NCBI GenBank assembly: GCA_002269645.1
Contig: NIVC01000006.1
Coordinates: 620,001-684,000, forward strand
DNA: 64,000 nucleotides
Direction: 5' to 3'
Origin: Macrostomum lignano
Taxonomy: Eukaryota
This document shows positions 2,941 through 64,000 of this stretch, in pieces. The translations under genes were made by a program, and so were the position numbers. Each line of letters starts with the position of its first letter. The stretch's first letter is position 1. The notes under the pieces are model-generated. The model was not told the DNA's origin, did not search any database, and saw only the letters and a list, made by a program, of their open reading frames with translations.

Positions 2941-5900
2941 TCAGGCTGCATTCTGCCGCATGCCCAAAGTCGGATACTTCAGCGGCCTTCGGATGGTCAG
3001 CTCGCAGCAGGGCACCTGTTGTCCATTGCTCCGATCGAGCACCCTGTTGATCACTCGGGGCACAACGGCGGTGAACTCTTCGCGATCCTGATTGAAATCA
3101 TCAGCCACCACTGAGCACAACTGCTGCGTGAACAAGCCGCCACTTTCCGGGTGTCGGCCGCTCAATCGTCCAGGCGATGTGCTATAAAAGTACATGCAGT
3201 CTTCCAAAGACACCTGATTGACCTGTTGAAACAGGCGGTGATTTGCTGGCGCGTCGCGGCAGGATTGAATAAAAAACAACTTTGGTTTGTCCTTCAGCTG
3301 CTGGCAGAGCTGGAACTTTGAGTAGATAAGCTGGAGAGCCACTTGTCTTCCATCGTGAGAGTAGATAAAATCGTGACCGCCGTGGCTCATGAGGCACACA
3401 ATGATGGCTTTGGAGTTTCTCAGCTCCTCTTCCGAGCAGATATTGGCAGGCAGGTGGTCGAAAAAGTGCGCGTTAACGTTTTGTACCTGCCTGCAGTCGA
3501 AGCCGAGGGAGGTAAAGCAGTGGTAAAGCGCGTTTTCGGCCATATCCGCCATGGAGCCCAGGCGTCGCGGCAGGTCCAGCCCAACGAAATCGTAGATGTT
3601 GATCACCAGAGCGATGCCCCGGTGGATGCCGTCCATGGGGTATGGCCCGGCTCTACTGGAGTCTTCCTGACCCCCAGTGGATTCGTTCGGTTCGCCGCCG
3701 CCCGTGGCGCCCTCTTCTTCTCGACCGCTTCCTCCGGGTCCGGAGCCCGAGGGGGGTGGCGGCTGGTCGCCGTTGCCTTGTTCGTCTTGTTCCATTGTGA
3801 CGCCTTGACTCGACAGGTTGGCTAGGCGCCGAATTCTGCAGTGAGGCGGTAAGTGAATGTGCGCTTGGTTATCGTGTCAGAATAGGTGACTTCACAAGGG
3901 TTGCTCAGGAGCCCTGGTACCATTCCCCTTCTTTCAGAAACGTACGAGCGTTACAATTTCTGCATCTCCTTTCCCAGCATGATTGTTTGTTTACGAAAAA
4001 ATTGTGCACAGCTGGAGCATCTTGTGCGGGTTAGTTTTGGTTGAACACTAAGAAGTAACGTGCGATAATCGATGCGAAATACCTTGTTCGTATTACTCGT
4101 AACACCAAGTACTCGTATTTAAAACAAGATTTTTTAAAGCGTCTTGGTGGTCGATGAACGTTAAATGTTTGCGCTGAAACTTTAACCAATCAAACTTACA
4201 ATTTCTCTAAAACCGTAGCGCACTCGTAGTGCTCGCAGAACTTCGCCCACTGCTGAGCGTTCATCTTCCGCTCGCCTTCCCTCCTGCAGAAGTCAGCGTC
4301 TGGTTTGTTTAGCCGCTGTCCCAGCTCAAGGAGAACGCTTTTGTGACCGCATCGAGCGGCCCAGATCAGAGGGGTGTTGCCGGAAAAGTCTGCCAGCTTT
4401 AAATTGGCACCTAGGTTGCACAGTTCGCGAGCTGTCAACTCCAATCCCAGCTTTGCGGCGTACAGGATTGCCGAGTATCGCATCGCATCCTGCAATGAAT
4501 TTCGTACTATCATTTTAAAGGGTTAGCTTGTGAAATCAGAGTCCGAAACTATCTTCTTTAAAATGGGCTCCCTGTGTATTTTTGGACGTCTAAGGCTGTA
4601 TCCATCATAGGGACGTTTTCGAAGTTGGAGCAGGTACGGGTATCTTGGTGCATTACTATTCAGTGTGATTGCATAGCACGATTGAACTACCTTTTGGTAC
4701 TACACTCTGTGTTGTCAATCTCAGTTATGTCAGCTTGATCGCGGCACAATGAAGATGAGGCCAATAAGTAAATTACTTCAAAGTTCGTCATCCGATCAAA
4801 GAGTCCTTCCAGCTCTTTCCATCTTGTCAGAAATCTCAAAAGACATGTTTGTCCGGACTGACTGACAAAAGCGTTCGATTAGAGTTTAGAGGATTAAAAC
4901 CACCATTTGTATCGATTTAAATACACGGGAACTGCTTTCGCCTTTCTGCCTCTGACGATAATATGAGTACATTAAACTCAATTGTAAATCAATAATTTTC
5001 TCAGTAAAGAAACTCATACCTGACGATTGATATCTGCTCCCATATTGACGAGCGGCTCCAGAACGTCTGTGCGGTTATTTTTGGCCGCAAGAATCAGTGG
5101 CGTCTGACGTAGATTGTCCTCGGCATTGATTTCCGCCTTCAAAGCGCTCTCGTTACTTTTAAAAGCCTCGCTAAACGCCGCCAGTACACTCTTGTGTCCC
5201 TTGACGGCAGCCCAGCACAGGGCGGTCCGGCCCTGCACATCTTTTTCACCGATCTCCAAGGATTTTTTGAGCATCTCGCTGACGATCTCGTCCTTGCCTT
5301 TGATGCACGCAATCATCAGCGGAGTTTGTCTCATTGGCCCGAAAGTTTGTTTGCACTTTTCCGGAGTGTCGCTCCGCTCTAAGAGCTGCTGGTCCGACCA
5401 CTGGTCCGGTGATGCCGGCCTGAAATGGTTTAATAGTTAGCCTGTCTAGAATTGAATGTAGCGAGCATTCTGTAAGTCTTTTTAACACACTTGTCAGTCA
5501 CCAATTACACGAAGTACATGCAGCGTGCAATACGCTCTAGTTTTCTAATTAGTCATCTGTGAACAAAGCACAAGCTTTAAAATATTTTATTTAGCAAACC
5601 ATTATTTAAAGATATAATGCACATGCACTTACAGAGGTTCCTCAGTAAAGCCATCTAGGAAAAACTTCTTAGTCAGGCTGGTCACGGCTGACGCACCGGA
5701 ACCGAATCTCTCAGTTCCCCTCTTCATCGCGGCCAGGCCCAGGCGTCTGTTCACCTCTGCTACCACGGTCTCAATGTGCTCCTTGCTGAACTTCTCATCG
5801 CGAATGACGGAGCAAACTGTATCCGAAAGTGACCCGGTGCTGCCGCCACTGCACAGAAGAAATTCGTGCTCAGGCAGACGGAACGAGGACTCCTCCAGTG

Positions 5901-8473
5901 AGCAGGCCTCAAGGCCCTCCGGCTGCTTCTCTGTTTGAATGAAGAAGACCTTCGGCTTGTCCTTCAGACCGGGGCACTGGCTGGCTCGAAATCGGGCCAC
6001 GATGTCTCTGACTTCGATTTCTTCTCCGTCGCTGGCAAAGACGCTGCCACCAGTGCCGTGTCCGATGAGGAAGCACACGAAGCTGCTTATGTCAGCGAGA
6101 TCCTGCGAAGTTACCACATTGTCAATGCATCTCCAAAAATCTGTACACCGAGGATTGTTGTATTTCTCAACAATAAAACTGAGTTTTTTGAAAGCATCCT
6201 CTATGTTTTGAGCCTCGTTTTCGAGATTTTTTGAGGGTGGAAACGTCGAAGTGTCGCCGCATTGTTCCACGGTAATAATGAGGCACAACCCCTTTTCTCG
6301 AGTCGCCATCTCAAAAGTGTCGCTAGTAGACGACCTGTTTGGGATTAGAAAAAGCAACCTGTTTGTATTGCAGGGTGATTTGCAGATAAATTAACTTTAT
6401 TTGACACTCACGATGCGTCGGGCATTAGAGCAAGTTTTGCTCCGTCTTGTGGACTTTCTGTAGGTGTGCTTGGTTCGGATGGACCCGCAATGGCTGAAAG
6501 TTTAGGGGTACCGAGTATTTAGGACATTAGTTCATAAGTTGCTCTAATTATGCTCGATAACTCTAATTTATCAATCAAGCCTGGGTTAGTATATAGTGGC
6601 TTACCCCGTCCGTGAAGAAGAAACGGGTGTTTAAGAAGTTCAGTAGCCGACTTCCTTTGATCTCTTTTCTGAGCGGTGCAGTTTCGGTAGAAGTCCTTTA
6701 AAGTGTTCGGGCAATTGTCGGGCAGGGGTGGTGCTCCCTGGTTTTTAACCCTGCGAACGATGGCTAGCATGTTCTTGCAGTCCCGGTGAGGCCGGTCTCC
6801 AGTCACCATCTGGTAAATCACGCAGCCGAACGCCCAGATGTCGGAGGCGCAGCTGTACGGAGTGTCTTCCGTTCCCTCCGTCAGAAACAGCTCGGGCGCC
6901 ATGAACGCTGGATCGCCCTTTGGATTTCCAGTCACGTGATCAGAGGCCGACTCAACGAGTTGAACTGCCAAGCCAAAGTCGATTAGCTTAATACTTCTGT
7001 TATCTCCTAACACCATGATTGTGCGACAGTTCACGTCTCTGTGAATAATTATCCTTGGAGCCATTGTGTGAAGGTAAGATAGGGCGCTACAGATCTGGAA
7101 GGCAACAGGAATAAATTTGAAGCTGAATTCAATTATTCAGTAAATTTTTTCACAATTTTATCCTACCTGTTTTGCAAGCTGTGATACAGTGTCGTAGTCT
7201 AGCGGCTTGCATCTGTTGATGAAGCTCTCCAGTGTTTGGCCATCAATCAGCTCCATCGAGACCAAAACGGACGGCTCGGCTGTCACTAGCGACATGTCCA
7301 GAAACCGGACAATATTTTCATGTTCCAACTTACAAAGACGCTTCTCATCATTGAAAATTTCTTTTAACTTTCCAAGCTGCTGGTCCTGCTGCTGGTCCTC
7401 GCCCAGCTGTACAGGCAGTCGGATGACCTTCGCCGCCCGACGCTTGGTGCCCTGCTTCTCCACAATTTCCAGCACATCGCTGTGCGCGCCTCGGGCTATG
7501 TGTCGCTTCTTTATCCAGCCAGGAAAAACCTCGGCTTCCTCCGGGCTGAAAATCAATATAGAAATTATTGCACCATCTCGAAGATAGGGTCCATGAGAAT
7601 TGCCCGCAGACAAATTGCCCGCCGAGTTCCTCCCGCCGAGGTTTGCCCGCAATGCTTTTTTCCTGCAGCTCATTTACCCATTTGTCTGCATTGCATTCTC
7701 AATGCTTAGTACATGTAAATCTTAACAAAGAGATTTACGAGTACACGATCAAAACGTTTTGCATGATAGTAACTGCTTATCAAATGATTTTTTGGGGGGG
7801 GGGCAATGCAGACAGAATCTAGCTGCCAAATGCGCTGCAGTAAAAAAGCACTGCGGGCAAACCTCGGCGGGAAAAAACTCGGCGGGCAACTCGCTCGCGG
7901 GTAATTCACTAGCGGGCAAATTGCACTGCGGGCAAATCTCGGCGGACAATTCTCGGCGGGCAATTCTCGGCGGGCAAATCTCCTGCGGGCAAATCTCGGC
8001 GGGCAATTTGTCTGCGGGCATTTCTCGTGCTCCCGTGCGACGCTAAGCTACCCCAATCAGTCTTTTCGTATCTTTTATTTCAGAATCGTCCAAGAGAAAT
8101 TGCACGCTGGCGCATAGAGTGCGACTTTTCAATATGGCTGAGTATAAGTTAATTTAACTTTTAACATTTAAACTTGCTTGCTAAAGGCAGGGACGTAGCC
8201 AGGATTTCCGATTAGGGAGGCACGTCTGCTAGAAATTGGAGGCCCCAAGCGCCGGATTACATTAGCCCTAATAGCTCCGCCGGTCAAAGATTGAATAAAT
8301 AAATTTACAGTTCATTTAGAATTGATTTGAACAAAATAGCAATATTTGACCTGCGCAGCCAAGGATGACCAAAAAGACTTTGACAATTCTCCATTTAAAG
8401 TACGAGTTTGGAAACAATGCAACGAATTCACTAATCAACTCTGTATTAGTTAATACATTTACCAAGGCTGCAT
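2941..8473 (-). CDS. Gene A: 8-exon kinase-like / pseudo-caspase / ankyrin-repeat / caspase fusion protein, 1082 aa
   Basis: Exons (minus): 8473-8463, 7545-7167, 7094-6605, 6493-6412, 6334-5633, 5419-5020, 4489-4200, 3835-2941. Total 3249 nt; all introns GT..AG, phases 2,0,1,2,2,0,2, no internal stops. Kinase motifs AAK, HRDVNCRT, DFG, APE, SDIWAFGC. Pseudo-caspase IGHG..KPKVFFIQTEK. ANK motifs TPLMIAC, TALCWAA, TPLILAA, TPLIWAA. Caspase MSHG..KPKLFFIQSCRD. The 11-nt first exon (ATG CAG CCT TG|gtaaat) is the least certain part. Confidence 0.85.
7587..8034. mobile_element. MITE-like element with GGG...CCC termini in intron 1 of gene A
   Basis: Left gggtccatgagaattgcccgcagacaaattgcccgccgag is the near-perfect inverse of right ctcggcgggcaatttgtctgcgggcatttctcgtgctccc. 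The imperfect inverted repeat extends ~110 bp, with internal GCGGGCAAA subrepeats. Absent from copy A'. No clear TSD. Confidence 0.7.
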
Positions 8474-9195: not shown

Positions 9196-10169
9196 ATGGC
9201 CGAAGGTTCTGAGCCAGGGTAAGAAATAAAACCAAAATTAACGCTTTTATCGAACTTTTTAAGCCATGTATTATTAATACTTTCAGATTTCAAATTGACT
9301 TAAATATAACAAACTTGCTTTTGCTTGCGATTCATTTTGGGATGTTCTAGGAATCGCTTTTGCCGCCTCAAAAAGACTATAGACCTTGAGCTTGCCCCAA
9401 GTGAATGTTGCATAATCTTCAAGCCCTTGCCAGTATCGATACCGTTGAATTGATCAAATATTGCACCATTTCGTAGGCTCTACGACGAGAAATGGGACAA
9501 GGTGAAGCTCCTCAGTCGAGGAGAGTTCGGCGAAGAGGTGCACGAGGTGCTCACCGACTTGAAGAATGCCTGCGCCGCTAAAACCATCCGCCTTCCAGTC
9601 ACCGAATCGCATCAGGAGTCGGGAGACTTAAAGAACATCGATCGCGTAGTGAAAACAACTCAACAGCTTTGCCGTCTGCGTCACGACAACATCATCCGTT
9701 TCTACGAAATCAAGCACAAGCAGTCGGAGTCAACCGTTGAGGTTCTGATGGAGCTGATCACCGACAAGACACTCGGCGAGTTCATTGGTAGTAAATGTCT
9801 GCCGGAAGAAAAAGCTAGGATTTTGTTAAAGCAGGTGAGTGATGATATTGAGCACATTGATCGTAGTATAATATCTCGAGATTACTTGCCTACTACTGAC
9901 GGGGGCGCAGGCGCCGCGATTGGGCAGCGAGTCCTCTATCGCAACCTCAAGGTAAAGGAGACCACTGTTTAACTTGAGGGTGCGCCCAGCCCCCGCCAGT
10001 AGTCGACAAGTTTGCAGAGGAGGCATCGGCATCGGCGACCCTCATCTCCGGGCCGATATCCCGGACAAAGGCGCGAAGGTCACAGATGTTGTCTGTGTCC
10101 CTGAGAATGCAAATCTCCCTGAGGTCGGTTCTGTTTTGCGAGATCAGATATTCCGAGACTTTCCTGTTT
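9196..10169 (+). pseudogene. 5'-only copy of gene B (exon 1 9196-9218, exon 2 9477-9834, part of intron 2), truncated at the duplication breakpoint
   Basis: Near-identical to 31512-32487. Encodes only the kinase N-lobe (SRGEFG, AAK); the sequence switches to Polinton DNA at 10170. Confidence 0.85.
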
Positions 10170-11598: not shown

Positions 11599-11600
11599 GT

Positions 11601-11978
11601 CTATGACAGAGAGTCGAGCACGCGTTTCACAGTTTTCTTGCTGACTTTTTGCTTTCGCTTTCCTCCGCCTGCTCTATTCTTCTTTGCTTTCGTCTTCCTA
11701 TTCTTAAGCTTTTTCCCACTAGCCTTGCTTGACCTCTTATTGCGATTTCCACCAGTTGCCTTTCGGGTGCCCTTCTTTTTCTTCAATCGTTTCGGACTTG
11801 CTTCAGTATTTCTTTTGCGCCTGACGTTGCTAAGCGTCGAGGCTGATGATGATGATATAGCCGCTGGCGGAGGCTGGTATGTCATGATCCCTGGGAAGCT
11901 CCCACAGCCATAGAGTGCAGGCTTTTCGTGTCCTGTCCTCACCCCCGAATATTGCTGGATTAGCTGCTGGTAGTTCAT
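11601..11978 (-). CDS. Small highly basic protein (Lys/Arg-rich C-half), candidate virion core / DNA-condensing protein, 125 aa
   Basis: Its ATG (11978) overlaps the penton TGA (ATGA). Sequence includes RRKRN..PKRLKKKKGTRKA..KKLKNRKTKAKKNR..KRKQKVSKK. It lies between penton and MCP. Confidence 0.6.
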   Translation of the reverse strand: MNYQQLIQQYSGVRTGHEKPALYGCGSFPGIMTYQPPPAAISSSSASTLSNVRRKRNTEASPKRLKKKKGTRKATGGNRNKRSSKASGKKLKNRKTKAKKNRAGGGKRKQKVSKKTVKRVLDSLS

Positions 11979-12802: not shown

Positions 12803-12821
12803 GATGAGGGATGTGCCAAAG

Positions 12822-13892: not shown

Positions 13893-14219
13893 GGGTTTAT
13901 CAAGATACGTGCCTATCCACCTGCTCTAGCTGTACAGTATTTTTTTCTTAAGTAGAAATTTATATTCCAATTAAATGATAGAGAAACGAGTGGCAAATTA
14001 ATTTATTACTGTCAGATTGAAACCTCTAACATCGTAACAGTCGGTGTATTTTCCGAAAGCAAACAATCCATAAAAACGAACACTAAAACACTCGCACACC
14101 AGCATTTCAGAAATAGCAGAGATAAAAAACAGCATAGTGCCGTCAGATATAGGCTGGATAATCATGTGCAAGCTAAAAGTAATTTAGTTAGTCCAATGCA
14201 TTCAAAGCATTCTAGCTGT

Positions 14220-15158: not shown

Positions 15159-15225
15159 CTCTTTCGCAAACATTATTTCCAATTACATAGATTAACATTC
15201 ATTCAGCTAAGCTAACCCACTCCAT

Positions 15226-17975: not shown

Positions 17976-18057
17976 CTGATCACCAACTTTTCCCATGTCT
18001 AGTCTAAAATCCCGAAACCGCCAACCCTCGCGGCCTCTCCCTTCCACCCGTCTCCGC

Positions 18058-25700: not shown

Positions 25701-28700
25701 ATCGAGATCACATTGATGTACTTTTAGTTTGGACTTATCACGTCAACGTCAGGCTGCATTCTGCCGCATGCCCAAAGTCGGATACTTCAGCGGCCTTCGG
25801 ATGGTCAGCTCGCAGCAGGGCACCTGTTGTCCATTGCTCCGATCGAGCACCCTGTTGATCACTCGGGGCACAACGGCGGTGAACTCTTCGCGATCCTGAT
25901 TGAAATCATCAGCCACCACTGAGCACAACTGCTGCGTGAACAAGCCGCCACTTTCCGGGTGTCGGCCGCTCAATCGTCCAGGCGATGTGCTATAAAAGTA
26001 CATGCAGTCTTCCAAAGACACCTGATTGACCTGTTGAAACAGGCGGTGATTTGCTGGCGCGTCGCGGCAGGATTGAATAAAAAACAACTTTGGTTTGTCC
26101 TTCAGCTGCTGGCAGAGCTGGAACTTTGAGTAGATAAGCTGGAGAGCCACTTGTCTTCCATCGTGAGAGTAGATAAAATCGTGACCGCCGTGGCTCATGA
26201 GGCACACAATGATGGCTTTGGAGTTTCTCAGCTCCTCTTCCGAGCAGATATTGGCAGGCAGGTGGTCGAAAAAGTGCGCGTTAACGTTTTGTACCTGCCT
26301 GCAGTCGAAGCCGAGGGAGGTAAAGCAGTGGTAAAGCGCGTTTTCGGCCATATCCGCCATGGAGCCCAGGCGTCGCGGCAGGTCCAGCCCAACGAAATCG
26401 TAGATGTTGATCACCAGAGCGATGCCCCGGTGGATGCCGTCCATGGGGTATGGCCCGGCTCTACTGGAGTCTTCCTGACCCCCAGTGGATTCGTTCGGTT
26501 CGCCGCCGCCCGTGGCGCCCTCTTCTTCTCGACCGCTTCCTCCGGGTCCGGAGCCCGAGGGGGGTGGCGGCTGGTCGCCGTTGCCTTGTTCGTCTTGTTC
26601 CATTGTGACGCCTTGACTCGACAGATTGGCTAGGCGCCGAATTCTGCAGTGAGGCGGTAAGTGAATGTGCGCTTGGTTATCGTGTCAGAATAGGTGACTT
26701 CACAAGGGTTGCTCAGGAGCCCTGGTACCATTCCCCTTCTTTCAGAAACGTACGACGTTACAATTTCTGCATCTCCTTTCCCAGCATGATTGTTTGTTTA
26801 CGAAAAAATTGTGCACAGCTGGAGCATCTTGTGCGGGTTAGTTTTGGTTGAACACTAAGAAGTAACGTGCGATAATCGATGCGAAATACCTTGTTCGTAT
26901 TACTCGTAACACCAAGTACTCGTATTTAAAACACGATTTTTTAAAGCGTCTTGGTGGTCGATGAACGTTAAATGTTTGCGCTGAAACTTTAACCAATCAA
27001 ACTTACAATTTCTCTAAAACCGTAGCGCACTCGTAGTGCTCGCAGAACTTCGCCCACTGCTGAGCGTTCATCTTCCGCTCGCCTTCCCTCCTCCAGAAGT
27101 CCAGCTCGTCTGGTTTGTTTAGCCGCTGTCCCAGCTCAAGGAGAACGCTTTTGTGACCGCATCGAGCGGCCCAGATCAGAGGGGTGTTGCCGGAAAAGTC
27201 TGCCAGCTTTAAATTGGCACCCAGTTTGCACAGTTCGCGAGCTGTCAACTCCAATCCCAGCTTTGCGGCGTACAGGATTGCCGAGTATCGCATCGCATCC
27301 TGCAATGAATTTCGTACTATCATTTTAAAGGGTTAGCTTGTGAAATCAGAGTCCGAAACTATCTTCTTTAAAATGGGCTCCCTGTGTATTTTTGGACGTC
27401 TAAGGCTGTATCCATCATAGGGACGTTTTCGAAGTTGGAGCAGGTACGGGTATCTTGGTGCATTACTATTCAGTGTGATTTCATAGCACGATTGAACTAC
27501 CTTTTGTACTACACTCTGTGTTGTCAATCTCAGTTATGTCAGCTTGATCGCGGCACAATGAAGATGAGGCCAATAAGTAAATTACTTCAAAGTTCGTCAT
27601 CCGATCAAAGAGTCCTTCCAGCTCTTTCCATCTTGTCAGAAATCTCAAAAGACATGTTTGTTCGGACTGACTGACAAAAGCGTTCGATTAGAGTTTAGAG
27701 GACTAAAACCACCATTTGTATCGATTTAAATACACGGGAACTGCTTTCGCCTTTCTGCCTCTGACGATAATATGAGTACATTAAACTCATTTGTGTTACA
27801 GTAAATCAATAATTTTCTCAGTAAAGAAACTCATACCTGACGATTAATATCTGCTCCCATATTGACGAGCGGCTCCAGAACGTCTGTGCGGTTATTTTTG
27901 GCCGCAAGAATCAGTGGCGTCTGACGTAGATTGTCCTCGGCATTGATTTCCGCCTTCAAAGCGCTCTCGTTACTTTTAAAAGCCTCGCTAAACGCCGCCA
28001 GTACACTCTTGTGTCCCTTGACGGCAGCCCAGCACAGGGCGGTCCGGCCCTGCACATCTTTTTCACCGATCTCCAAGGATTTTTTGAGCATCTCGCTGAC
28101 GATCTCGTCCTTGCCTTTGATGCACGCAATCATCAGCGGAGTTTGTCTCATTGGCCCGAAAGTTTGTTTGCACTTTTCCGGAGTGTCGCTTTGCTTCGGA
28201 GCTGCTGGTCCGTCCACTGGTCCGGCGATGCCGGTCTGAAATTGGTTAATAGTTAGCCTGTCTTGAGAATTCTGTAAGTTTTTTAACTCACTTCCAGTCA
28301 CCAAACACGAACTACATGCAGCATGCAATACGCAAACCATGCAAATCATGCAAACCATGATTGGAAGATGCATGAACATGCACTTACAGAGATTCCTCAG
28401 TGGAGCCGCCGTCTAGGAAAAACTTCTTAGTCAGGCTGGTCACGGCTGACGCACCGGAGCCGAATCGCTCAGTTCCCTTCTTCATCTCCGCCAGGCTCAA
28501 GCGTCTGTTCACCTCTGCCACCACGGTCTCAATGTGCTCCTTGCTGAACTTCTCATCGCGAATGACGGAGCAAACTGTATCCGAAAGTGACCCGGTGCTG
28601 CCGCCACTGCACAGAAGAAATTCGTGCTCAGGCAGACGGAACGAGGACTCCTCCAGTGAGCAGGCCTCAAGGCCCTCCGGCTGCTTCTCTGCTTGAATGA

Positions 28701-31700
28701 AGAAGATCTTCGGCTTGTCCTTCAGACCGGGGCACTGGCTGGCTCGAAATCGGGCCACGATGTCTCTGACTTCGATTTCTTCTCCGTCGCTGGCAAAGAC
28801 GCTGCCACCAGTGCCGTGTCCGATGAGGAAGCACACGAAGCTGCTTATGTCAGCGAGATCCTGCGAAGTTACCACATTGTCAATGCATCTCCAAAAATCT
28901 GTACACCGAGGATTGTTGTACTTCTCAACAATAAAACTGAGTTTTTTGAAAGCATCCTCTATGTTTAGAGCCTTGTTTTCGAGATTTTTTGAGGGTGGAA
29001 ACGTCGAAGTGTCGCCGCATTGTTCCACGGTAATAATGAGGCACAACCCCTTTTCTCGAGTCGCCATCTCAAAAGTGTCGCTAGTAGACGACCTGTTTGG
29101 GGTTAGAAAAAGCAACCTGTTTGTATTGCAGGGTGATTTGCAGATAAATTAACTTTATTTGACACTCACGATGCGTCGGGCATCAGAGCAAGTTTTGCTC
29201 CGTCTTGTGGACTTTCTGTAGGTGTGCTTGGTTCGGATGGACCCGCAATGGCTGAAAGTTTAGGGGTACCGAGTATTTAGGACATTAGTTCATAAGTTGC
29301 TCTAATTATGCTCGATAACTCTAATTTATCAATCAAGCCTGGGTTAGTATATAGTGGCTTACCCCGTCCGTGAAGAAGAAACGGGTGTTTAAGAAGTTCA
29401 GTAGCCGACTTCCTTTGATCTCTTTTCTGAGCGGTGCAGTTTCGGTAGAAGTCCTTTAAAGTGTTCGGGCAATTGTCGGGCAGGGGTGGTGCTCCCTGGT
29501 TTTTAACCCTGCGAACGATGGCTAGCATGTTCTTGCAGTCCCGGTGAGGCCGGTCTCCAGTCACCATCTGGTAAATCACGCAGCCGAACGCCCAGATGTC
29601 GGAGGTGCAGCTGTACGGAGTGTCTTCCGTTCCCTCCGTCAGAAACAGCTCGGGCGCCATGAACGCTGGGTCGCCCTTTGGATTTCCAGTCACGTGATCA
29701 GAGGCCGACTCGACGAGTTGAACTGCCAAACCGAAGTCGATTAGCTTAATATTTCGGTTATCTTCTAACACCATGATTGTGCGACAGTTCACGTCTCTGT
29801 GAATAATTATCCTTGGACTCATTGTGTGAAGGTAAGATAGGGCGCTACAGATCTGGAAGGTAAAATTAAAAAACTTGAATCTGAGTTCAGTTCTTGAGTA
29901 GTTTTTTTTTTTAAATATTTATCTTACCTGTTTTGCAAGCTGTGATACAGTGCCGTAGTCTAGCGGCTTGCATCTGTTGATGAAGCTCTCCAGTGTTTGG
30001 CCATCAATCAGCTCCATCGAGACCAAAACGGACGGCTCGGCTGTCACAAGCGACATGTCCAGAAACCGGACAATATTTTCATGTTCCAACTTACAAAGAC
30101 GCTTCTCATCATTGAAAATTTCTTTTAGCTTTCCAGGCATCCCCTGCTGCTGGTCCTCGCCCAGCTGTACAGGCAGTCGGATGACCTTCGCTGCCCGACG
30201 CTCGGTGCCCTGCTTCTCCATGATTTCCAGCACATCGCTGTGCGCGCCTCGGGCTATGTGTCGACTCTTAATCCAGCCAGGAAAAATTTCGGTCTCCTCG
30301 GTACTGAAAATCAATATTGTGAATTTTGCACCATCTCGAAGATACAATGCCAATCTTGTTACTAAGGCTGCCTCAGTGAGATTCACTCACGCGACTGATG
30401 ATTCAATATGATCCTCTTTAAATGATAATACCCCTATTGGGATCAATAAGTGGTCTGAGAATTACATGAAGTGAACTCCCTTTGCTATGTGCTAAACGGA
30501 GCGCATTTAGATGCCTACTACAGGAAATGCTAAACTGTAAGTGCAAATTTAATTTGCTCGCTAAAGGCAGGGTTTCCGATTGGAGAGAGAACACCGATCA
30601 AGCCGGTCAAAGATTGATTAAAAAAGTCCACAGTTCATTTAGAATTGATTTGAACAAAGTAGCAATTTGATCTGTGCAGCCACGGATGGCCAAGGAGACT
30701 TTGATAATCCTCCATCTAAAGTACAAGTTTGGAAACTATAAGCAACGAATTCACTGCTCAACTCTATTAGCTAATTCACTTACCAAAGCTGCATTTTGAC
30801 CAGATTACAGGACTGGGGTCTCCTCAGGTAGAATTCTATAAGCTTGGTCTTGACAACGAGAGCTTTGCAAGTAAATAGATTAAGTAGACTGCTGTCTAGT
30901 TAGAGAGAGGGTCCAAAATGGAGGGTAGAGGGAGGAGGGAGGGTGGCATGGAACACATTGGAGTAATGCACGGGGCGGGTGGCCAGTCCTCTCTACCCGC
31001 ATTTACCCTGCGCAGCACCAACCCCAGTGAGCGGCAGAAAGGCAGAAAACTGCATGCACAACTGTACAATACGGAAACAAGAGCTATATGTATAGCCTTT
31101 ATGGCGGATAGCAGAAAAAGCAAAAACTCTAAAGTACGTTTTTGTAATCGGGTCTGATATGGGTTCGGCTGAATTTGAAAAATGAAGACGAGATGAGAGC
31201 GACGCTACTAAAAGCGCTGCTGGTTTTGCAACGATATTGTAGCCTCTACGCCAAAGCACGTGACAACTGCTTTAGGGTATGAGAGCTCTTTAGTGCTGGA
31301 ATGTACGCCAAAGATATGGTACCTTGTTCAGACTTCTTTCCCTAGATGCACACTGTGTCAGACAGTGGTTAGGGCATGTGAATAAAAATGAATAATGTGA
31401 CAACCTCAAAATTGGGTTGCAGAAAATTACGCCAGTTTTCCAGCGTTAAGATTTGCCTAGTAGCGAAATCATTGCTGTAGGGCGATTAAATTAAACGAGA
31501 ACTCCCTGTCCATGGCCGAAGGTTCTGAGCCAGGGTAAGAAATAAAACCAAAATTAACGCTTTTATCGAACTGTTTAAGCCATGTAAAAGTATTATTAAT
31601 ACTTTCAGATTTCAAATTGACTTAAATATAACAAACTTGCTTTTGCTTGCGATTCATTTTGGGATGTTCTAGGAATCGCTTTTGCCGCCTCAAAAAGACT

Positions 31701-32487
31701 CTATAGTCCTTGAGCTTGTCCCAAGTGAATGTTGCATAATCTTTAAGTCCTTGCCGATACCGTTGAATTGATCAAATCTTGCACCATTTCGTAGGCTCTA
31801 CGACGAGAAATGGGACAAAGTAAAGCTCCTCAGTCGAGGAGAGTTCGGCGAAGAGGTGCACGAGGTGCGGACCGACTTGAAGAATGTCTGCGCCGCTAAA
31901 ACCATCCGCCTTCCAGTCACCGAATCGCATCAGGAGTCGGGAGACTTAAAGAACATCGATCGCGTAGTGAAAACAACTCAACAGCTTTGCCGTCTGCGTC
32001 ACGACAATATCATCCGTTTCTACGAAATCAAGCACAAGCAGTCGGAGTCAACCGTTGAGGTTCTGATGGAGCTGATCACCGACAAGACACTCGGCGAGTT
32101 CATTGGTAGTAAATGTCTGCCGGAAAAAGAAGCTAGGATTTTGTTAAAGCAGGTGAGTGATGATATTGAGCACATTGATCGTAGTATAATATCTCGAGAT
32201 TACTTGCCTACTACTGACGGGGGCGCAGGCGCCGCGATTAGGCAGCGAGTCCTCTATCGCAACCTCAAGGTAAAGGAGACCAATGTTTAACTTGAGGGTG
32301 CGCCCAGCCCCCGCCAGTAGTCGACAAGTTTGCAGAGGAGGCATCGGCATCGGCGACCCTCATCTCCGGGCCGATATCCCGGACAAAGGCGCGAAGGTCA
32401 CAGATGTTGTCTGTCTCCCTGAGAATGCAAATCTCCCTGAGGTCGGTTCTGTTTTGCGAGATCAGATATTCCGAGACTTTCCTGTTT
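22746..32487 (+). repeat. Segmental duplication, copy 2 (includes the 22-bp minisatellite at ~22770-23215)
   Basis: Colinear with 1-10169. Confidence 0.95.
25749..30794 (-). pseudogene. Gene A' (duplicate of gene A): same 8-exon fusion gene with a 1-nt deletion in the first ankyrin exon
   Basis: Exons 30794-30784, 30303-29928, 29852-29363, 29251-29170, 29092-28388, 28235-27837, 27299-27007, 26643-25749. Exon 6 is 399 nt versus 400 nt in gene A (frameshift at ~28188-28200). The caspase exon translates identically to gene A over the ORF. The lesion could be an assembly error. Confidence 0.75.
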
Positions 32488-35400
32488 AGATTATAAGCAT
32501 AACAAAGCGGGTCTGCCTGTACTCGGCGCAACTGTTACAAAGGAGCTGGTGTTGCTGGTGGAGCAACTCCTGCTAGTATGACGGGTGATTTTCGACCTGG
32601 GCATGGGTGTAGCCTCACCAAAAGGTGGCTGCCGTCAGGGTTGCTGAACACCTTGGCGAGAGAATCCGCGAGCTTGTTACCCAGGATATTTCTGTGATCG
32701 GGTGTCCAGGTGATTTATAATAGTTTTAAGGACTGAGAGAAATTGAGAACGACTAAAATGACTATTGTAGTCTATAAAAACTGATAAACTACGAGTACGA
32801 ACTTCTTAACGAATTAAAAAGAATATGAAGACTTCCAAGACTTCGAAGCCTTGTATCTTCTTATTTACCACAGCTAACTGCTATGCACTCTTCCAACCTA
32901 AAAAAACCTTGCATCGTCGCGCTTTGTAGGTCTGCGACGCTCTCCGCTATTTGCATTCGGAGACGCCCGACAAGCCGTGCGTTATTCACAGGCAGATCAA
33001 CCCCAGCACCATTGTGGTGTCAGCTGATGGGCGCAGGGCTAAGCTAACTGACTTCGGATTGGCCATCCTGCTGGTCAGCGCCAAGGCGCATCACCTCTCT
33101 GTGCTACGCGGCGACACGCACTACATGGCTCCCGAGCTGTTTCTGACCAAAGAGACCGAGGAAACGCTTTACAGCTGCGCCTCGGACATCTGGGCGTTTG
33201 GCTGCCTGCTCTACCGCATGACGGCTGGCAAGAGGCCGCACAGCGACTGCAAGAACATGCTCAACATTGGTCGTCGGATTCAAAATGAAGGCGCGCCGAC
33301 GCTCCCCAAAGAGTGCTCCAGGGTGATGCAGGACTTCTATACCAAGTGCACAGCTCACGATAGAAAAGACAGAGAGACTGCGGCGCAGTTGATGGAGCAC
33401 GCGTTTATTGTAAAAGGTAAGCGTGTGAAAGCAAACGACTGCTGCTAATGGGCTCAGCAGCTCGGCGGTAAACGCGTTTAGCTGTCCCGTCAAAGACCCC
33501 AGAGTTCCGTACGCAAACGCATTAATTTGGCGCTAGTTATCATAAGGGTGAATCTGACAGGGCACGAGTGAGAATGCCGAAAACTGAAAAATTCATGGCC
33601 GCGCATACCCTTATTGTTGGTCTGCTAGTGGTAGTCTTTGGGGATAGCGGAATGGGCTTTAATACTTTTGCTTCCTCGCTTGCAAAAGGGTCGACGCAGT
33701 TGCTTTAATTTTTTGGCAATGCCCAAAAGAGTGTGAGTCATATGACGTCAAACTCGATAGGCAAAAAAGAATAATTTACTGCACAGAAAAAATTAAAATT
33801 AGCAAAAAGCTACAAAAATACTTAAGAGCATCAAACATGACCAACTGGTACTACTTAGTAGTAGCAAGAAATTCGCACTACATTTTTTCTTTTATAACTT
33901 ACAGCTGCCAATTTTGTAACTTTTAGAGCCGTCTGAATACAAACTTTTGACTGAGGATGAAGTCCGTGGCCCGAAAGATGACACGTAAGTTCTCGAAGGT
34001 AATTATTTAAAAATACGAATATTTATGTGATAAAAGACTTGATAAGTTTTAAGTTAGGCGGCTTCTATAAGCAAAAGTTCGCATGTTTTCGAAGTTCTCT
34101 TTGCAATATGGATGTTACAAAATGCGTTACTTCAGTCAAACTGCAGTGCAGCACTTCAAAGCCAGGCCGATACGGGGTTGCTGTCTGGTGATTGCTATTC
34201 AGCAGTACGACGAAGCTGTCCAGTTAAGTACGTGCCCAGGGGTGCAAGAAGACGCTGACAGGATTGAGCGCGTCTTTCAATCACTGAAGTTTCAAGTGGA
34301 ACGCCTTGAAGACACCAACAGTGTTGACATTTGGCGAGCCCTGCAAGCCCTCGGCAGCTTCAGTAAGTGGCAACAACTCGACAGTTTTGTGTGCTTCATC
34401 ATTGGATGCGGATCGAATGACATCATCTACGCTAGTGATGGGGAGGAGATCGAAATCAAGGAGATTGTGACCAGCTTTCGGGCTAGCCGATGCCCAGCTC
34501 TGAGGGGCAAGCCAAAAATGTTCTTTGCGCAGACGCACGGGGCTGATTGTGCGGAATCAGAAGCGTCTTCTCTGCAGCTTCGAGAGGCAGACTTCCTTGT
34601 GTGTCGCTCTGTCGTTAGACAGAGTGAGAGAACATTTGTGCAAGCCCTATGCGACGTCATCGAGGACACTCATAATCTGGCCGAGGATGTTGAAGCCCTG
34701 ATCGATATGGCCAACTCGAAGGCCTTAGGAAAGCTCAATAAGATTTCGAGTCTCAATAAAAAACTGATGCTACATCCTGAGCCGGAAACATCTCTGTAAG
34801 TTTATTGAGGTATTCTTGTAGTCGAATAATTTTATCACATTTCAAATCATTTTTCACGGCTCGTGAGCGGCTTCATGAAATAGTAGTTCTGCCAACGTCC
34901 TAAAGAGAATCTGTTCCTCTAGCATTCCTTTAGATAGGGAAGCGTTCGAAATTGCTGAAGTAAAATGCGCACATCATAATTTTGGAGAGAGACTATTGAT
35001 GGACAGGAAGGTACCTCACAGGTTTTGTTTAACTAGAACTCACTAGCCTGATTTCCAAAATTTTAGGGACGCGTCTCCAAACAAATGGTCCGATGAACAG
35101 CTTTCTCAGCTGTGCAACTCGTTAGGAAACCAGGAGAGAAGATTCGGGCCACTGAACCAGACTTTGCTCATGATTGCATCGGCTAAAGGCAAGGAAGAAC
35201 TCGTGAGCAATCTTCTGAAGCAGGGACATCGACCAATTATCGATCTCGTCAGGGCCCAGGATGTTCAGATGCGGACTGCAATCGCCTGTGCTGCCATTCA
35301 AGGACACGAAAATGTTCTCCTAGCTTTCACAAAAGCATTTGAGAACAATTCGGGCAATCTGGAAGCAGAAGTGAACAGACCCGACAGCCTGGGACAGACG

Positions 35401-37073
35401 CCTCTCATTCTAGCCGCCAGAAATCATAGAAATTCAGCTCTGGAACAGCTTGTCCAGATGGGCTCCAAGTTGAACCATCAGGTAAGAACACAACCGGATG
35501 TTTTAAAATGGCTACCAAAGCTTACGCTCGTACACAAGCTTTACAAAAAATTACCAGCACAAGTTTCTTTCATCCGCAGGACTCTATGGAGTACACAGCT
35601 GTTGCCTATGCAGCCATGGAGGGATTTGATGACACGGTTCGCATTCTGTGCAAACTGGGAGCCGATCCGAAGTTGCCAGACTTCCTAAAAAACACTCCTC
35701 TCATCTGGGCTGCTCGCGGTGGTCATAAAAATGTCATTGAAGCTCTACGCGGCCATTTGAGCTGCTCAACCGACGAGGATCACTGGCGAGCGAAGGGGGA
35801 GGAAGATATGGATGCACTGGAGTGGGCTAAGCTGTGTGGGCACTACCAGTGTGCCAGCTTCATTCAGGAAGCGTAAGCATTTGCTTTTACTACAGTCTGG
35901 GTTTGCTTTTACCAGGATTATTTCAGGTGATTGTGCGAACATCGTAATTTTGCAATTCTCGCAGAAGAAAAGTAAACTTTTATATGTTATTGAGCTATTT
36001 CACCAGTGTGTGGGAAGCTTTATCATATACATGTAAATACGAGTAGATACTTGAATTTTCAATGTAACAAGCTTTTGATTCAACAATTGAGAGTTTAAAC
36101 AAACCAGCAGTGCGTTGAATTTGCTCAACATTCGTCTATTCGCAGAATCCGATCGCTTGCTTCACCAACGGGCCCAGCAACAACTCCATCCAGCGAGAGC
36201 TCAGGTGACAATGACTCCGGCGGTTCACCGCCAGGCGGTGCTGCGGGGGGTGGTTTGTCCAATCAGTCCACGACAAGACCCGGCGGCTCCGCTGGCGATT
36301 CCCCTGAGGGGCCTAGAACAGGCAGGTCTACGACTCCACCTTATCCCATAAGCGGCACGCGAAGACGACTGGCCAAAATCATTAATATTGTCGACTTTGT
36401 GCACGGCTGTGGCATACAACGGCGAGACGGCTCAATGAACGAAATGACAGAGCACCATCTCTACAGGTGCTTCACTAGTCTTGGATTTGAAATCAAGCAG
36501 TATCTCAATGTTGGGAGTATTTTTTTCGAAAATCTTCTGACAGTAGACTACACTGAGGAGGACTACAATAATGCAGATGCGTTTCTACTGTGCATAATGT
36601 CACACGGCGAGCAGGGTTACATCTTCGCTTACGACGGAGTTCGAATTCTTCTAGAGAACGTGTTTAGACAGTTTCGTCAGTGCCCGGGCTTGCGCAAAAA
36701 ACCGAAGATTTTCATCGTACAGGCCTGCCGCGGTTTGGAATCGGACAGATTCACGGCGAGGCAGCCCGGCCAGTTCAACAATGGAGCGCACGAGGACTGC
36801 CTGTGCGTCTACAGCACTTACAAACGGAACGTCAGCTTTCGCGACAGTAGGCGTGGCGGCTATTTCACCAGAGCACTGAAGGATGTCATACTGACAGATT
36901 TCGATCGGAACTCAGAGGACCTGCGGTCTGCGTTCACAAAAGTAGTTGATAAGGTGGCTTCTGAGACCAATACTCAGCAGATTCCAGTGTACCAGTCAAC
37001 TCTGAGACAGCCGCTTCGCTTGCCACCGAAAGGGGTGTCTACCACTGCAACGCAGAGCTCAGACCGCTGTTGA
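31512..37073 (+). CDS. Gene B: 8-exon pseudokinase / pseudo-caspase / ankyrin-repeat / caspase fusion protein, 1073 aa
   Basis: Exons 31512-31534, 31795-32152, 32930-33416, 33927-33984, 34136-34795, 35067-35481, 35580-35872, 36146-37073. Total 3222 nt, GT..AG introns, phases 2,0,1,2,2,0,2 as in gene A. Kinase HRQINPST (catalytic Asp lost), DFG, APE. Pseudo-caspase IGCG..QTHG. ANK repeats. Caspase MSHG..QACRG. Confidence 0.88.
32530..32740 (-). mobile_element. Decayed non-LTR retrotransposon fragment (RNase H C-terminus) in intron 2 of gene B
   Basis: Minus strand 32708-32652 encodes WTPDHRNILGNKLADSLAK, resembling the RNase H motif W(V/I)PGHxGIxGNExADxLAK. The frame closes soon afterwards. 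Confidence 0.55.
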
Positions 37074-61380: not shown

Positions 61381-64000
61381 CTATCGTAGAGGTGGAAACC
61401 TCAGTCTTTTCCTATTTGTCGATCGGTAGCACGCGATCGTCCTGTTTTCATTGGTTGCTGCTGTGGTGTGCGATGCGAACGGCAACACTGACATCAGGTC
61501 GTCGTTCATCAAATCGAACTGGTTAATAAGTATGTTGCACAGCGTCAGAATGAATCTTCCAGAACACATGCTCCCTTTGACAACACTATGGATGTACAGA
61601 CAGTCCTCATGTTGACCTACGTTCAGGTCGCCGACGCTTCGAGCCACTGTTCGCGCCTGAACATTGCCTCGGTTTGCTTGAACAATAAAAACCTTGGGCT
61701 TGTTTTTCAGCTGCGGGCACATTCTGAACTGTTTGTACACATTTTTCAGTGAGACGCGACTTCCGTCAGCTGAGTACACGTAGCCCTGCTCTCCGTGCGA
61801 CAGGATGCAAAGAACAAGGGCGTCCTCCTCAGCGTACTCTTCTGGCTGCCGGTCAATCGTCAGGAGGTGACCGAAGGTCTCATGAGACGGGTTATTCAAG
61901 CTGAGGACGTCGAAGCCTAGCCGACTAAAGCAAATATAAAAACTATCGTCCATGAGAGATCGCGGTGGAAGATTTGTCTCTGGTGGAAAATTAGTGACTT
62001 GTATTAGGATGGCTCTTCCGCGACGTGCACTTTGCATCGGATAGTACGGAGAAGAATCTGGATCGTCTGGACCACCACCATCATCGCCACCACCGCCACC
62101 ACCTCCACCACCACCACCGCCATCATCGCCACCACCACCACCGCCACCATCGCCACCACCACCACCGCCATCTCCGCCGTGGCCGTTGCCTCTGTCGCTT
62201 GGCTCCTCCACAGGAGAGTTGGATGGATCGCCGCTCTCTTCAGGTTGGTAGCCGCAGCCAGTTTCGCTATCAATACTTAATCCACTTTCGCTTCCTTCGC
62301 TTGTTGGAGCGCGCTGTAATCTAAAATTATAATATTTTTTATTGTCTGTGTTTGAATACTAATCCAAAGTAACTACAAGATCAAGATGCAATAGCAAATA
62401 ACTTACATCAAGCGTGAACAGTTGAGGTGACCCGAAAACTTCGCCCATTGATAAGCGTTCATATTCCTCTCTCCGGTCAGGCGCCAATAGTTCGCGTCTT
62501 TCATCAACTCTCCGAATATTTCAATGACCTCGATGTGGCCGCAGCGAGCAGCCCAGATCAGAGGTGTGTTGCCGAAGCAATCTTTCAGCCATAAATTTGC
62601 TCCGAAGTCACACAACATTTTGAAAGTTCCTGCGTGTCCCTTTTTCGCTGCGTGGACGGCAGCTGAGTATTTAAAAACGTCCTGAAAAACAATTGCATTT
62701 TCTTAGGGTTTCATTCATACCAAAAAGGTTTAAATTTTTAACCTCACCTGGCAATCTATATCAGCTTGCATTTTGATGAGCTGCTCCAAAACAGATTTCT
62801 GGTCATTTATGGCCGCCAGAATCAGCGGGGTTTGTCGAAGATTATCTTCTCTATTTACTTCTGTCGTCATAGTGCTAGCGTTGTTTGTCAATATTTTCTC
62901 AAACGCTATCAGGACTTCTTTGTGGCCTTTGAGGGCGGCCCAGGAAATGGCTGTCCGACCCATTACATCCTGGACACTGACCAGGGATGTGTCAGAATTT
63001 CTATTGAGCAGCGATAGTACCAGGTCATGTTTGCCTCTGGCGGATGCGATTGTTAGCAGAGTCTGATTCAAAGTCCCAAACTTGTGGGCTGTATTCTCCT
63101 GAGATCTGCACAGGGCTGCAAGCTGCGCGTCCGACCACTTATCCGGGGACGCAGAGCTGAATATCCTAATTTGTGATGCGATAGATGGATGTAATGGATG
63201 TGATACGAGTATCTTTCACTTTTGATAGCCCCAGATGTATAGCATTTTATTTGTCTATCTAATAAAATAACAATTAAAACATCAAATGGAATTTTATTAT
63301 CAATGGTTGCTAATAAAGTTTGTACTTAAGAGATTAAAGCAGTGGTATCTGCGGATGTCTAAAACCAAGAAACATGGCTAACAGTGACAATAACTTACTG
63401 CACATCGTCAGATGCAGCGCTATTCAAGAAGAATTTCTTGGTCAGACTGGTGACTGCAGAAGCTTCAGTACCGAATTTTTCGGATCCACCTTTCATCTCG
63501 GGTATGCCCAGCCGCCTGTTCACCTCTGCCACCACGTTCACAATGTGCTCTTTGCTGAATATTTCCTCTTGAACGACGGAGCATAGAACCTCAGCAAGCG
63601 ATCCATTCTCTCCTAGTGAGCCACCGCGGCAGAGAAGAAAGTCTTTCTCAGGAAGTTTAAACGACGTCTCTTCCAGCGGGCAGGCGTTCAGGGTTTCAGG
63701 CTGCTGCTCAGTCTGAACAAAGAAGATCTTCGGTTTGCCCTTTAGAAAGGAGCACTGGTTGACTCGGAACCTGGCCACGATGTCTCTTACTTCGACCTCT
63801 TCACCGTCGCTAGCGAAGAAGCTGGCACCGGTCCCGTGTCCGATGATGAAGCACACGAAGCTGCCCATGTCGGGGAGATCGGACCTGACTATTTTGTTGA
63901 CCGCTGCAAAGATGTCAGCGCTAGTAGGCTTACTTGTGCATTGTTGGATTGTAAAACCAAGGTTTTCGAAGGTGTCGGTAATTATTTTAACTTCCTTCTG
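61381..64000 (-). CDS. Gene C (5' part outside the window): pseudo-caspase / ankyrin repeats / poly-Gly linker / catalytically dead caspase
   Basis: Exons >64000-63399, 63156-62748, 62681-62407, 62320-61381, with phases 2,0,2 as in genes A and B. Pseudo-caspase IGHG..QTEQ; terminal caspase LSHG..QANRG (Cys to Asn). Confidence 0.85.
62065..62185 (-). repeat. Coding GGT/GGC trinucleotide repeat (poly-Gly interrupted by Asp) in the gene C linker
   Basis: GGDGGGGGGDGGGGGGDDGGGGGGGGGGGDDGGG. Confidence 0.9.

Follow-up and report, generated by a model that had tools for sequence, protein, structure and literature searches.

A tandem cluster of candidate kinase-like, pseudo-caspase, ankyrin and caspase genes in the flatworm Macrostomum lignano

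Caspases are normally controlled via death-fold adaptors (CARD, DED). According to recent surveys, invertebrates have swapped the death fold for other pro-domains, and to our knowledge the function of these pro-domains has been tested by nobody. A stretch of 64,000 nt from Macrostomum lignano (assembly GCA_002269645.1, contig NIVC01000006.1, positions 620,001 to 684,000 of the forward strand; hereafter the window, with positions counted from its first letter) raises the question of what such a pro-domain can consist of, as kinase-like, caspase and ankyrin repeat (ANK) segments follow one another on the minus strand at 8473..2941 (gene A). Are these segments the exons of a single gene, and if so, where did this gene come from and what would its product do? 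On balance, we favour the reading that each intact copy, i.e. gene A and its divergent paralog gene B, is one eight-exon gene for a four-module caspase of about 1080 aa, of fused origin and regulated in cis. The locus would then represent a compact case of a live caspase that carries ankyrin repeats, a dead caspase and a dead kinase on the same chain, with paralogs that show the likely parent units, in a regenerating model organism that is transgenic and accessible to RNA interference.

Six minus-strand open reading frames (ORFs) were found at the gene A locus, where a sequence-only reading of the window had placed the gene. Pfam assigned them to the N-lobe (7158-7673) and C-lobe (6519-7064, E 1e-27) of a Pkinase domain, an internal Peptidase_C14 domain (5629-6357, E 2e-22), a first (5014-5334) and a second block of Ank repeats (4196-4513), and a terminal Peptidase_C14 domain (2941-3795, E 6e-33). 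The proposal that GT..AG introns join these ORFs into one frame of 1082 aa agrees with our spliced model, in which eight exons and seven GT..AG introns afford 3249 nt and 1082 aa without an internal stop. The modules follow in the order kinase-like domain, pseudo-caspase, about six ankyrin repeats, disordered linker and terminal caspase with an intact dyad. The apparent ORF ends arise because phase-2 GTAAGT donors after positions 5633 and 4200 place a TAA in frame; both donors were found, so that the explanation of these "stops" offered by the sequence-only reading holds.

Exon 1 (8463..8473) comprises the ATG and 8 further nt (MQP plus 2 nt) ahead of a phase-2 donor GTAAAT, and the 5' untranslated region (5'UTR) extends upstream. 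An equally short first exon with an identical junction is present in the UniProt/GenBank models of sister copies, which start with MQLC (P0001, P0300, P0301) or MQPC (P0302), and in the partial model P0299 the homologous 5'UTR is read through into exon 2. Exon 2 (7167..7545) encodes the N-lobe of the kinase-like domain (Pfam Pkinase) with a degenerate glycine-rich loop (G-loop; ARGAHSDV) and a retained beta3 Lys (RAAKVI), while exon 3 (6605..7094) encodes the C-lobe with HRDVNCRT at 7043..7020 and retained DFG (6983..6966) and APE motifs. The 82-nt exon 4 (6412..6493, phase 1 to 2) encodes a Pro/Ser-rich linker, and its homologue in gene B measures 58 nt and is included in the GenBank model PAA94591.1. 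The pseudo-caspase is encoded by exon 5 (5633..6334), where GHG is retained (6069..6052), QTEKQ (5940..5923) replaces QACRG, and the exon closes with a phase-2 donor, CT/GTAAGT. Exon 6 (5020..5419) covers the first part of the ankyrin repeats (Pfam Ank_2/Ank), and exon 7 (4200..4489; Pfam Ank_2; phase-2 donor TT/GTAAGT) the last repeats together with a cap. Exon 8 (2941..3835) finally encodes a linker and the terminal caspase with His936 (MSHGG, 3390..3376), Cys977 (QSCRD, 3270..3253) and a TGA stop at 2941-2943; its linker of 62 aa is rich in Gly, Pro, Ser and Glu and disordered, and only the coding frame is open.

Comparison with the other members of the cluster revealed the same organization. 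Gene B (31512..37073, plus strand, 1073 aa) consists of eight exons at 31512-31534, 31795-32152, 32930-33416, 33927-33984, 34136-34795, 35067-35481, 35580-35872 and 36146-37073, with start phases of 0, 2, 0, 1, 2, 2, 0 and 2 that match those of gene A. A and B share 40% identity; five of their seven introns lie at the same aligned residue, and the other two fall within unalignable linkers and are equal in phase. Gene C is cut by the end of the window, and its 3' part (61381..64000, minus strand) is open for 744 aa across four exons (phases 2, 0, 2) encoding the pseudo-caspase (64000-63399), the ankyrin repeats (63165-62748 and 62681-62407) and the linker with the caspase (62320-61381). The claimed recurrence of the exon structure in B and in the visible part of C is thus borne out in phase throughout, and at the level of the aligned residue for the five A/B introns. 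The linkers between the modules cannot be aligned between A, B and C, yet their coding frame is open in all three, while most other frames carry stops. That all exon-length differences between the paralogs are multiples of three was set aside as proof of joint translation, as this is weak and expected of any coding exons; four of the seven intron-length differences are multiples of three as well.

Independent gene models could be compared with these structures, as the GenBank annotation of Mlig_3_7 goes back to transcripts assembled from RNA-seq data, and trans-splice and poly(A) evidence was used to delimit each gene (PMC5730564). The spliced model of gene B is identical at every residue to PAA94591.1 (BOX15_Mlig030125g2, 1073 aa), and full-length B-type GenBank models exist from two genomic copies (PAA94591.1 and PAA89054.1). 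The model of gene C corresponds to the database pieces P0307 and P0135, which are split in a poly-Gly run and spliced across intron 7. Full-length A-type models of 1073-1084 aa are present in UniProt. Another database entry, the B-type model P0003 (UniProt A0A1I8GU33), carries an N-terminal extension (residues 1-78) that is the antisense translation of A' exons (window 29584-29694 and 30138-30260, plus strand); this extension stems from faulty annotation in the earlier ML2 gene set.

Two further members of the cluster, A' and B', come in addition to the three copies recognized by the sequence-only reading, so that the window holds five pieces (A, A', B, B' and C). A' (25749..30794, minus strand) lies head-to-head with B and is a near-identical tandem copy of A with the same eight exons and about 96% DNA identity, both copies belonging to a tandem repeat of about 22.7 kb. 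Its exon 6 (28235-27837) carries a 1-nt deletion (399 vs 400 nt; CGAAGC instead of CGAAAGC, as judged against the copy on NIVC01000166.1 and UniProt A0A1I8GZ94) that causes a frameshift, and up to the resulting stop the model equals GenBank PAA94590.1 (583 aa), which is spliced across intron 5. Because all eight exons are intact in the homologous copy on another contig (L001), A' would appear to be either a young pseudogene or an assembly (long-read indel) error. B' (9196..10169, plus strand) is a truncated duplicate of the 5' end of B, comprising the first two exons and some of intron 2, and is ended by a transposon and satellite block, namely an integrase-bearing element followed by 7 kb of satellite arrays. 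The adjoining long-ORF block (10315-14993, minus strand), with an integrase core at 12876-13892 (rve, E 3e-13) and a PC4-like ORF at 14220-14993, is probably the retroelement that interrupted B'.

Does the locus really express one long chain? It could instead give rise mainly to shorter products, by intron retention after exons 5 or 7 or by internal spliced leader (SL) trans-splicing, with kinase-pseudocaspase, kinase-pseudocaspase-ANK, ANK-caspase or caspase-only proteins acting in trans and the full-length chain as a minor product. Database models of such truncated shape do exist: the C-type model P0005 (786 aa) ends with the ATG/TAA at the donor of exon 7, and the three A-type GenBank models are all short (533-583 aa). 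Gene A furthermore offers in-frame ATGs after the acceptors of exon 6 (MRQTPL, in 5014-5334) and exon 8 (MEQDEQ, in 2941-3795), stand-alone ANK-caspases are encoded in the same genome (P0139), and SL trans-splicing is widespread in M. lignano, where about 7% of the assembled transcripts represent polycistronic precursors (PMC5730564). However, the transcript-derived B model is full length in two genomic copies, and the annotation pipeline, which cut transcripts at mapped trans-splice sites, left B uncut (PMC5730564). The short A-type models are not explained by retained introns either, since one results from the genomic frameshift of A' (PAA94590.1, spliced across intron 5) and the remaining two break off where about 10 nt of the pseudo-caspase exon are skipped. 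In addition, the internal ATGs of gene A are not conserved in B or C, and a TAA within a phase-2 GTAAG donor is automatic rather than a designed stop. Predominantly short products are an unlikely outcome. As regards the two models with the skip, P0299 (PAA89053.1) and P0300 (PAA70070.1) derive from A-type copies on other contigs and end in "...AEMKSDSAPVRQP"; these ends need the omission of about 10 nt (AAGGGAACTG), the homologous site of the window lying at about 5715-5730, and may reflect an expressed deletion allele, or else a de novo transcript that was mapped incorrectly.

If a single chain is made, which of its modules would be active? For the kinase-like domain of A, the best PDB sequence matches were WNK1 and WNK3 (E 5e-32), followed by STE, RAF and TAK1 kinases, with SLK, BRAF and PAK included, and no RIPK was present among the best 60. 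Foldseek with an AlphaFold2 (AF2) model of a B-type chain led to the same conclusion, WNK3 ranking first among top matches that also comprised TNIK, MAP4K4 and MEK1. The RIPK comparison drawn in the sequence-only reading therefore does not hold for the kinase, which is WNK/STE-like. The domain shares with WNK kinases, its best solved match, the motifs around the catalytic loop (LHT..P.IIHRD..C) and ...C.N...I.RRV. However, it is not a WNK, because a canonical beta3 Lys is present (RAAK); it also has Ser at the position of the WNK G-loop Lys and lacks the Lys and Asn of the catalytic loop, both of which are substituted in the alignment of HRDVNCRT with HRDLKCDN of WNK1.

The set of residues of an active kinase (G-loop, beta3 Lys, alphaC Glu, HRD Asp, catalytic-loop Asn, DFG Asp) is incomplete in A, B and C, and the metal-binding Asn of the catalytic loop is replaced by Thr in all three. 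Gene B reads HRQINPST, with Gln for the HRD Asp, and has lost the alphaC Glu, and gene C reads HRNINCKT, with Asn for the HRD Asp, and NFG instead of DFG, while gene A combines HRDVNCRT and its degenerate G-loop with retained Lys, HRD and DFG. Many ANK-kinase paralogs of M. lignano, for comparison, retain HRDINCSN and DFG. Because catalytic-loop residues are lost, the kinase-like domains are predicted pseudokinases; for B and C the sequence leaves no doubt, and for A, in which the retained Lys, HRD and DFG make some residual kinase activity conceivable, the prediction is likely to hold.

Of the two caspase domains, the internal one has a large-subunit half that is closest to the large subunits of caspase-3/6/7 in the PDB (E 6e-20). 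It lacks the catalytic Cys and both S1 arginines in every copy (QTEKQ in A, QTHG in B and QTEQQ at the Cys site), in line with its previous designation as a pseudo-caspase; the His is present in A and C and lost in B, which reads GCG. The terminal domain is closest to caspase-7/3 (E 5e-21), with QSCRD aligned to QACRG. Both the His/Cys dyad (A: SHG and QSCRD; B: SHG and QACRG) and the equivalents of Arg64, Gln161 and Arg207 in the S1 pocket of caspase-3 (A: RRLGS, Q, GRHPESGG; B: RRDGS, Q, FRDSRRGG) are retained, and the terminal caspase of A and B thus looks catalytically live as judged from its residues. In contrast, the terminal domain of gene C cannot be a protease, because it reads QANRG (61683..61666; Cys to Asn) and has lost the equivalents of both arginines. 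The executing role assigned earlier to the terminal caspase would be conceivable for A and B, whereas it does not extend to C, to the frameshifted A' or to the truncated B'. An (L/H)ED-C motif was considered as an inter-subunit autoprocessing site and rejected, as it aligns with the start of the EAD-F strand of caspase-3/8 and not with IETD.

Pfam detected only Pkinase, Peptidase_C14 and Ank families in the exons of A and in full-length family members, and no DED, DD, RHIM or CARD. In the AF2 model of a B-type protein, the ankyrin region forms about six helix-pair repeats with a predicted local distance difference test score (pLDDT) of around 93, and the 60 residues of the following linker score around 30. 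Foldseek with the full B-type model returned kinase matches only.

To trace the origin of this architecture, the terminal caspase domain was used in an exhaustive profile search of 1.84 billion representative proteins, which gave 7036 matches. The closest single-domain relatives were all from M. lignano and included a short ANK-caspase (BOX15_Mlig004809g2), ANK-kinase-caspases with intact kinase and caspase motifs (BOX15_Mlig018903g1-3) and proteins that join an N-terminal module with a weak Mab-21_C match to ankyrin repeats and a caspase (BOX15_Mlig012150g1, Mlig018330g1, Mlig026614g1). These modular caspases are the nearest relatives of both caspase domains of the window and use the same blocks in other orders; unlike the window genes, each of them has a single caspase domain with intact active-site motifs, and none has the four-module order. 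Likewise, the closest kinases belong to ANK-kinase proteins of M. lignano and Branchiostoma, in which the ankyrin repeats come first. No close protein combining kinase and caspase was found outside M. lignano in the exhaustive search; a jellyfish protein (P0158) and multi-caspase models of arthropods and fish are only distantly related. The sequence-only reading had seen a lineage-specific and expanded family, and this is supported, the expansion being in tandem. The multi-caspase models of insects, mites and fish were rejected as close relatives, their high scores being the sum of several domains. Two of the more distant proteins may be mentioned for their own architecture: P0158 (Sanderia malayensis, EukProt), a model of 1127 aa with the order ANK-caspase-ANK-caspase, and P0174 (Acropora millepora XP_044178405.1), in which a "GT4 glycosyltransferase in conflict systems" domain is joined to a caspase.

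In a neighbour-joining tree of 49 caspase domains (100 bootstraps), the pseudo-caspases formed a clade (94%) that was sister to the caspases of the ANK-kinase-caspases (91%), while the terminal caspases grouped with all other ANK-linked caspases of M. lignano (81%); the tree is based on simple distances between very divergent sequences, and long-branch attraction between the pseudo-caspases and the Mlig018903 caspases is possible. An exclusive grouping of pseudo-caspases and terminal caspases was seen in none of the 100 bootstraps, and internal duplication was rejected as the source of the two domains, given this result and their identity of 24%. P0139, a stand-alone ANK-caspase of M. lignano, carries the cap motif of exon 7 (FSGNTPLIWAAR...M.A..WA) as well. 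The placement in the tree and this shared cap motif suggest that the architecture arose by fusion of a kinase-caspase unit with an ANK-caspase unit, after which both upstream enzymes would have been inactivated. The living relative of the first unit would be BOX15_Mlig018903, an ANK-kinase-caspase with intact motifs, and that of the second BOX15_Mlig004809g2.

How far has such a protein been described before? A caspase of M. lignano with a kinase-like pro-domain was reported in 2024 as sister to platyhelminth ANK-caspases, and caspases with pro-domains other than the death fold were proposed to be of initiator type (PMC11463336). That protein stems from the same species and almost certainly from the same family or its ANK-kinase-caspase sister BOX15_Mlig018903, but the account in the accessible portions of the article takes up one sentence, in which an internal pseudo-caspase, ankyrin repeats, a dead kinase or a tandem cluster do not figure. 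Our literature search found no description of the four-module order, the dead kinase, the internal pseudo-caspase, the fusion origin or the tandem cluster. The earlier statement that no described protein has all four modules therefore stands insofar as no paper on such a protein was found, and requires amendment insofar as models are deposited in UniProt and GenBank and the kinase-caspase combination appears in PMC11463336. The same paper states that ANK-caspases occur in parasitic platyhelminths only and that free-living flatworms lack them. M. lignano is free-living, and several of its proteins have ankyrin repeats directly N-terminal to an active-looking caspase (P0139, P0157, P0148, P0166). 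The window genes resemble the platyhelminth ANK-caspases in that the ankyrin repeats (exons 6-7) directly precede the linker and caspase (exon 8). The parasite proteins themselves were retrieved neither by word-index searches (14 matches with the caspase domain, 7 with a six-sequence profile of M. lignano ANK-linked caspases) nor by the profile search. Even if the locus should turn out to be ordinary, it would still correct the claim that free-living flatworms are without ANK-caspases.

The closest functional precedent is caspase-X of the coral Acropora millepora, in which an inactive and then an active caspase domain are joined in one cDNA-verified polypeptide. Killing by the whole protein is weaker than that by its isolated active domain, removal of the inactive domain raised it, and the protein was modelled as a cis heterodimer resembling cFLIP/procaspase-8 (PMC4715348). 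A dead and a live caspase in a single chain are common to caspase-X and the window proteins. However, caspase-X lacks a kinase, and its two domains are not separated by ankyrin repeats, while the inactive domain of the window proteins keeps its His in A and C. The origin of the window proteins would be independent of caspase-X, because their two caspase domains fall into different M. lignano clades. With cFLIP-L/procaspase-8 and the RIPK1-FADD-caspase-8-cFLIP ripoptosome they share a parts list of kinase-fold protein, pseudo-caspase without Cys and caspase, but they lack DED, DD and RHIM, their kinase is WNK/STE-like and probably inactive, and the parts are covalently joined. In RIPK4 and ANKK1, too, a kinase fold precedes ankyrin repeats within a single polypeptide, without the pseudo-caspase that stands between them in the window proteins and with a RIPK-type kinase, which the window kinase is not. 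The resemblance to the ripoptosome and to RIPK4/ANKK1 is analogy, not homology of assembly.

With the terminal caspase as the only catalytic module, the protein would belong to the initiator type of caspases; its pro-region is unusually long and resembles that of initiator caspases, which induced proximity switches on. The pseudo-caspase would dimerize with the terminal caspase in cis and restrain it, a part that cFLIP plays towards procaspase-8 and the inactive domain plays in coral caspase-X, and control in cis is favoured because caspase-X offers a tested precedent. Pseudokinase and ankyrin repeats would provide a binding surface, and a ligand or partner engaging it would bring about recruitment, oligomerisation or release of the protein. 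The fast turnover of copies by tandem duplication, divergence and decay would fit a role in stress, cell death or innate immunity better than a housekeeping role, and other proteins with an N-terminal module, ankyrin repeats and a caspase in the same genome are in keeping with such a role. A cell-death or immune function of the family is an inference, as is the scheme of the sequence-only reading in which the modules sense, regulate and execute. Should the cis pseudo-caspase gate the terminal caspase, the cFLIP/caspase-8 principle would have been invented independently a second time, after coral caspase-X, and the locus would help to understand how gene fusion can build new cell-death switches.

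Several observations weigh against a cis-regulated four-module caspase. The A-type GenBank models are short, for the reasons given above, none of full length was found for copy A itself, and the tree that points to fusion shares the weaknesses of its simple distances. The inter-subunit linker of the caspase is short and without a conserved Asp cleavage site. In the AF2 model of the full B-type chain, the domains are confident but the predicted template modelling score (pTM) is 0.39 and no confident inter-domain packing is seen, which speaks neither for nor against a cis dimer of pseudo-caspase and caspase, and the small-subunit half of the B-type terminal caspase is poorly predicted. Purifying selection is only moderate and confounded by gene conversion between copies. 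Finally, no published expression, localisation or functional data were found, and the locus tags occur in no searchable paper.

Another possibility is that the chain is a non-lethal signalling scaffold and protease, comparable to the MALT1 paracaspase or to caspase-8/cFLIP in NF-kB-type signalling or differentiation. Its multi-domain build is scaffold-like, pseudokinases and ankyrin repeats being typical protein-binding modules, and substrates unrelated to apoptosis are cleaved by cFLIP/caspase-8 heterodimers (summarised in PMC4715348). As the inter-subunit linker is short and has no conserved Asp site, the activity may be independent of executioner-style processing. However, the birth-and-death dynamics of the cluster fit genes of conflict or stress better than core signalling, and we consider a scaffold role rather improbable. 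These dynamics are visible in the A/A' duplication, the frameshift of A', the transposon-truncated B' and the dead caspase of gene C.

A further idea deserves mention, although we attach a low probability to it. The dead kinase and the dead caspase could be integrated decoys that mimic host targets of effectors of pathogens or selfish elements, so that engagement releases or oligomerises the live caspase; the bait may be meant for caspase inhibitors of the p35, IAP or serpin kind or for kinase-targeting effectors. If true, the protein would be a single-chain guard-and-executioner switch, analogous to the integrated decoys of plant NLRs and built on a caspase, and M. lignano would have diversified a whole range of proteins of the type "sensor module + ANK + caspase", their N-terminal modules being kinases, pseudo-caspases and possibly Mab-21/cGAS-like domains.

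To what extent is the cluster under selection at all? The ratio of nonsynonymous to synonymous substitution rates (dN/dS) was 0.31 for A vs A', 0.33 for B vs its L001 copy and 0.26 for A vs its L001 copy, based on small counts between copies that are 96-98% identical in DNA. By module, it was about 0.35 for the pseudokinase and 0.2-0.3 for the pseudo-caspase. Thus, the dead modules do not evolve neutrally, because their values are similar to those of the whole and not about 1. Between 2941-4200 of A and 25749-27007 of A', there is no difference in the caspase exon (895 nt) and one of less than 1% in introns 6 and 7; in contrast, the kinase exons have a dS of about 0.07, and the divergence of introns 1, 2 and 5 amounts to 12-25%. 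The identity of the caspase exon and the near-identity of its flanking introns suggest that gene conversion has recently affected the 3' half of A/A'.

That the genes are decaying, largely non-functional products of segmental duplication in a neopolyploid genome, joined by chance and without a selected function as a unit, draws on the frameshift in A', the truncation of B', the loss of Cys and S1 arginines in the terminal caspase of C, the dead kinase and first caspase in all copies, a dN/dS of about 0.3 that does not amount to strong constraint, and the 180 Mb of duplicated blocks of at least 95% identity in Mlig_3_7 (PMC5730564). For A and B such pure decay is quite improbable, because at 40% identity they retain eight open exons, the intron phases and all terminal catalytic and S1 residues; in addition, the dN/dS of the dead modules is 0.2-0.35 rather than about 1, the unalignable linkers are open in frame in three paralogs, and B is expressed according to its transcript-derived model.

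Among the modular relatives, four M. lignano proteins (P0148, P0287, P0166, P0013) share a conserved module of about 560 aa with a GS[FY]AEGW...D.D motif, which is fused to ankyrin repeats and a caspase in three of them and to ankyrin repeats and a kinase in one. Its Pfam match to Mab-21_C is marginal (21.9-24.7 bits vs a cut-off of 24.1), no PDB sequence match was obtained, and AF2 on a four-sequence alignment gave a pLDDT of 39. If this module were a cGAS-like nucleotidyltransferase, a sensor would be fused directly to a caspase.

Outside the caspase cluster, the window contains dense satellite arrays at 15220-22036 and also at 35-468 and 22780-23213. They comprise 17 copies of a 47-mer at 15354-16132 (99% matches), 36/32-mers at 16554-17365, 38 copies of a 36-mer at 18443-19793 within a 2-kb block of 56% GC and strong C skew, 56 copies of a 15-mer at 21199-22036, and 20 copies of a 22-mer that open each 22.7-kb repeat unit. 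An intact piggyBac-type transposase ORF of 491 aa is located at 49122-50597 on the plus strand (DDE_Tnp_1_7, E 1e-71). Between B and C, four related plus-strand ORFs (41526-42413, 45413-46417, 52940-53902 and 57843-58752; 66-92% DNA identity) look like a small tandem family resembling G-protein-coupled receptors, two of them giving weak 7tm_1 (rhodopsin-family) matches below the Pfam cut-off.

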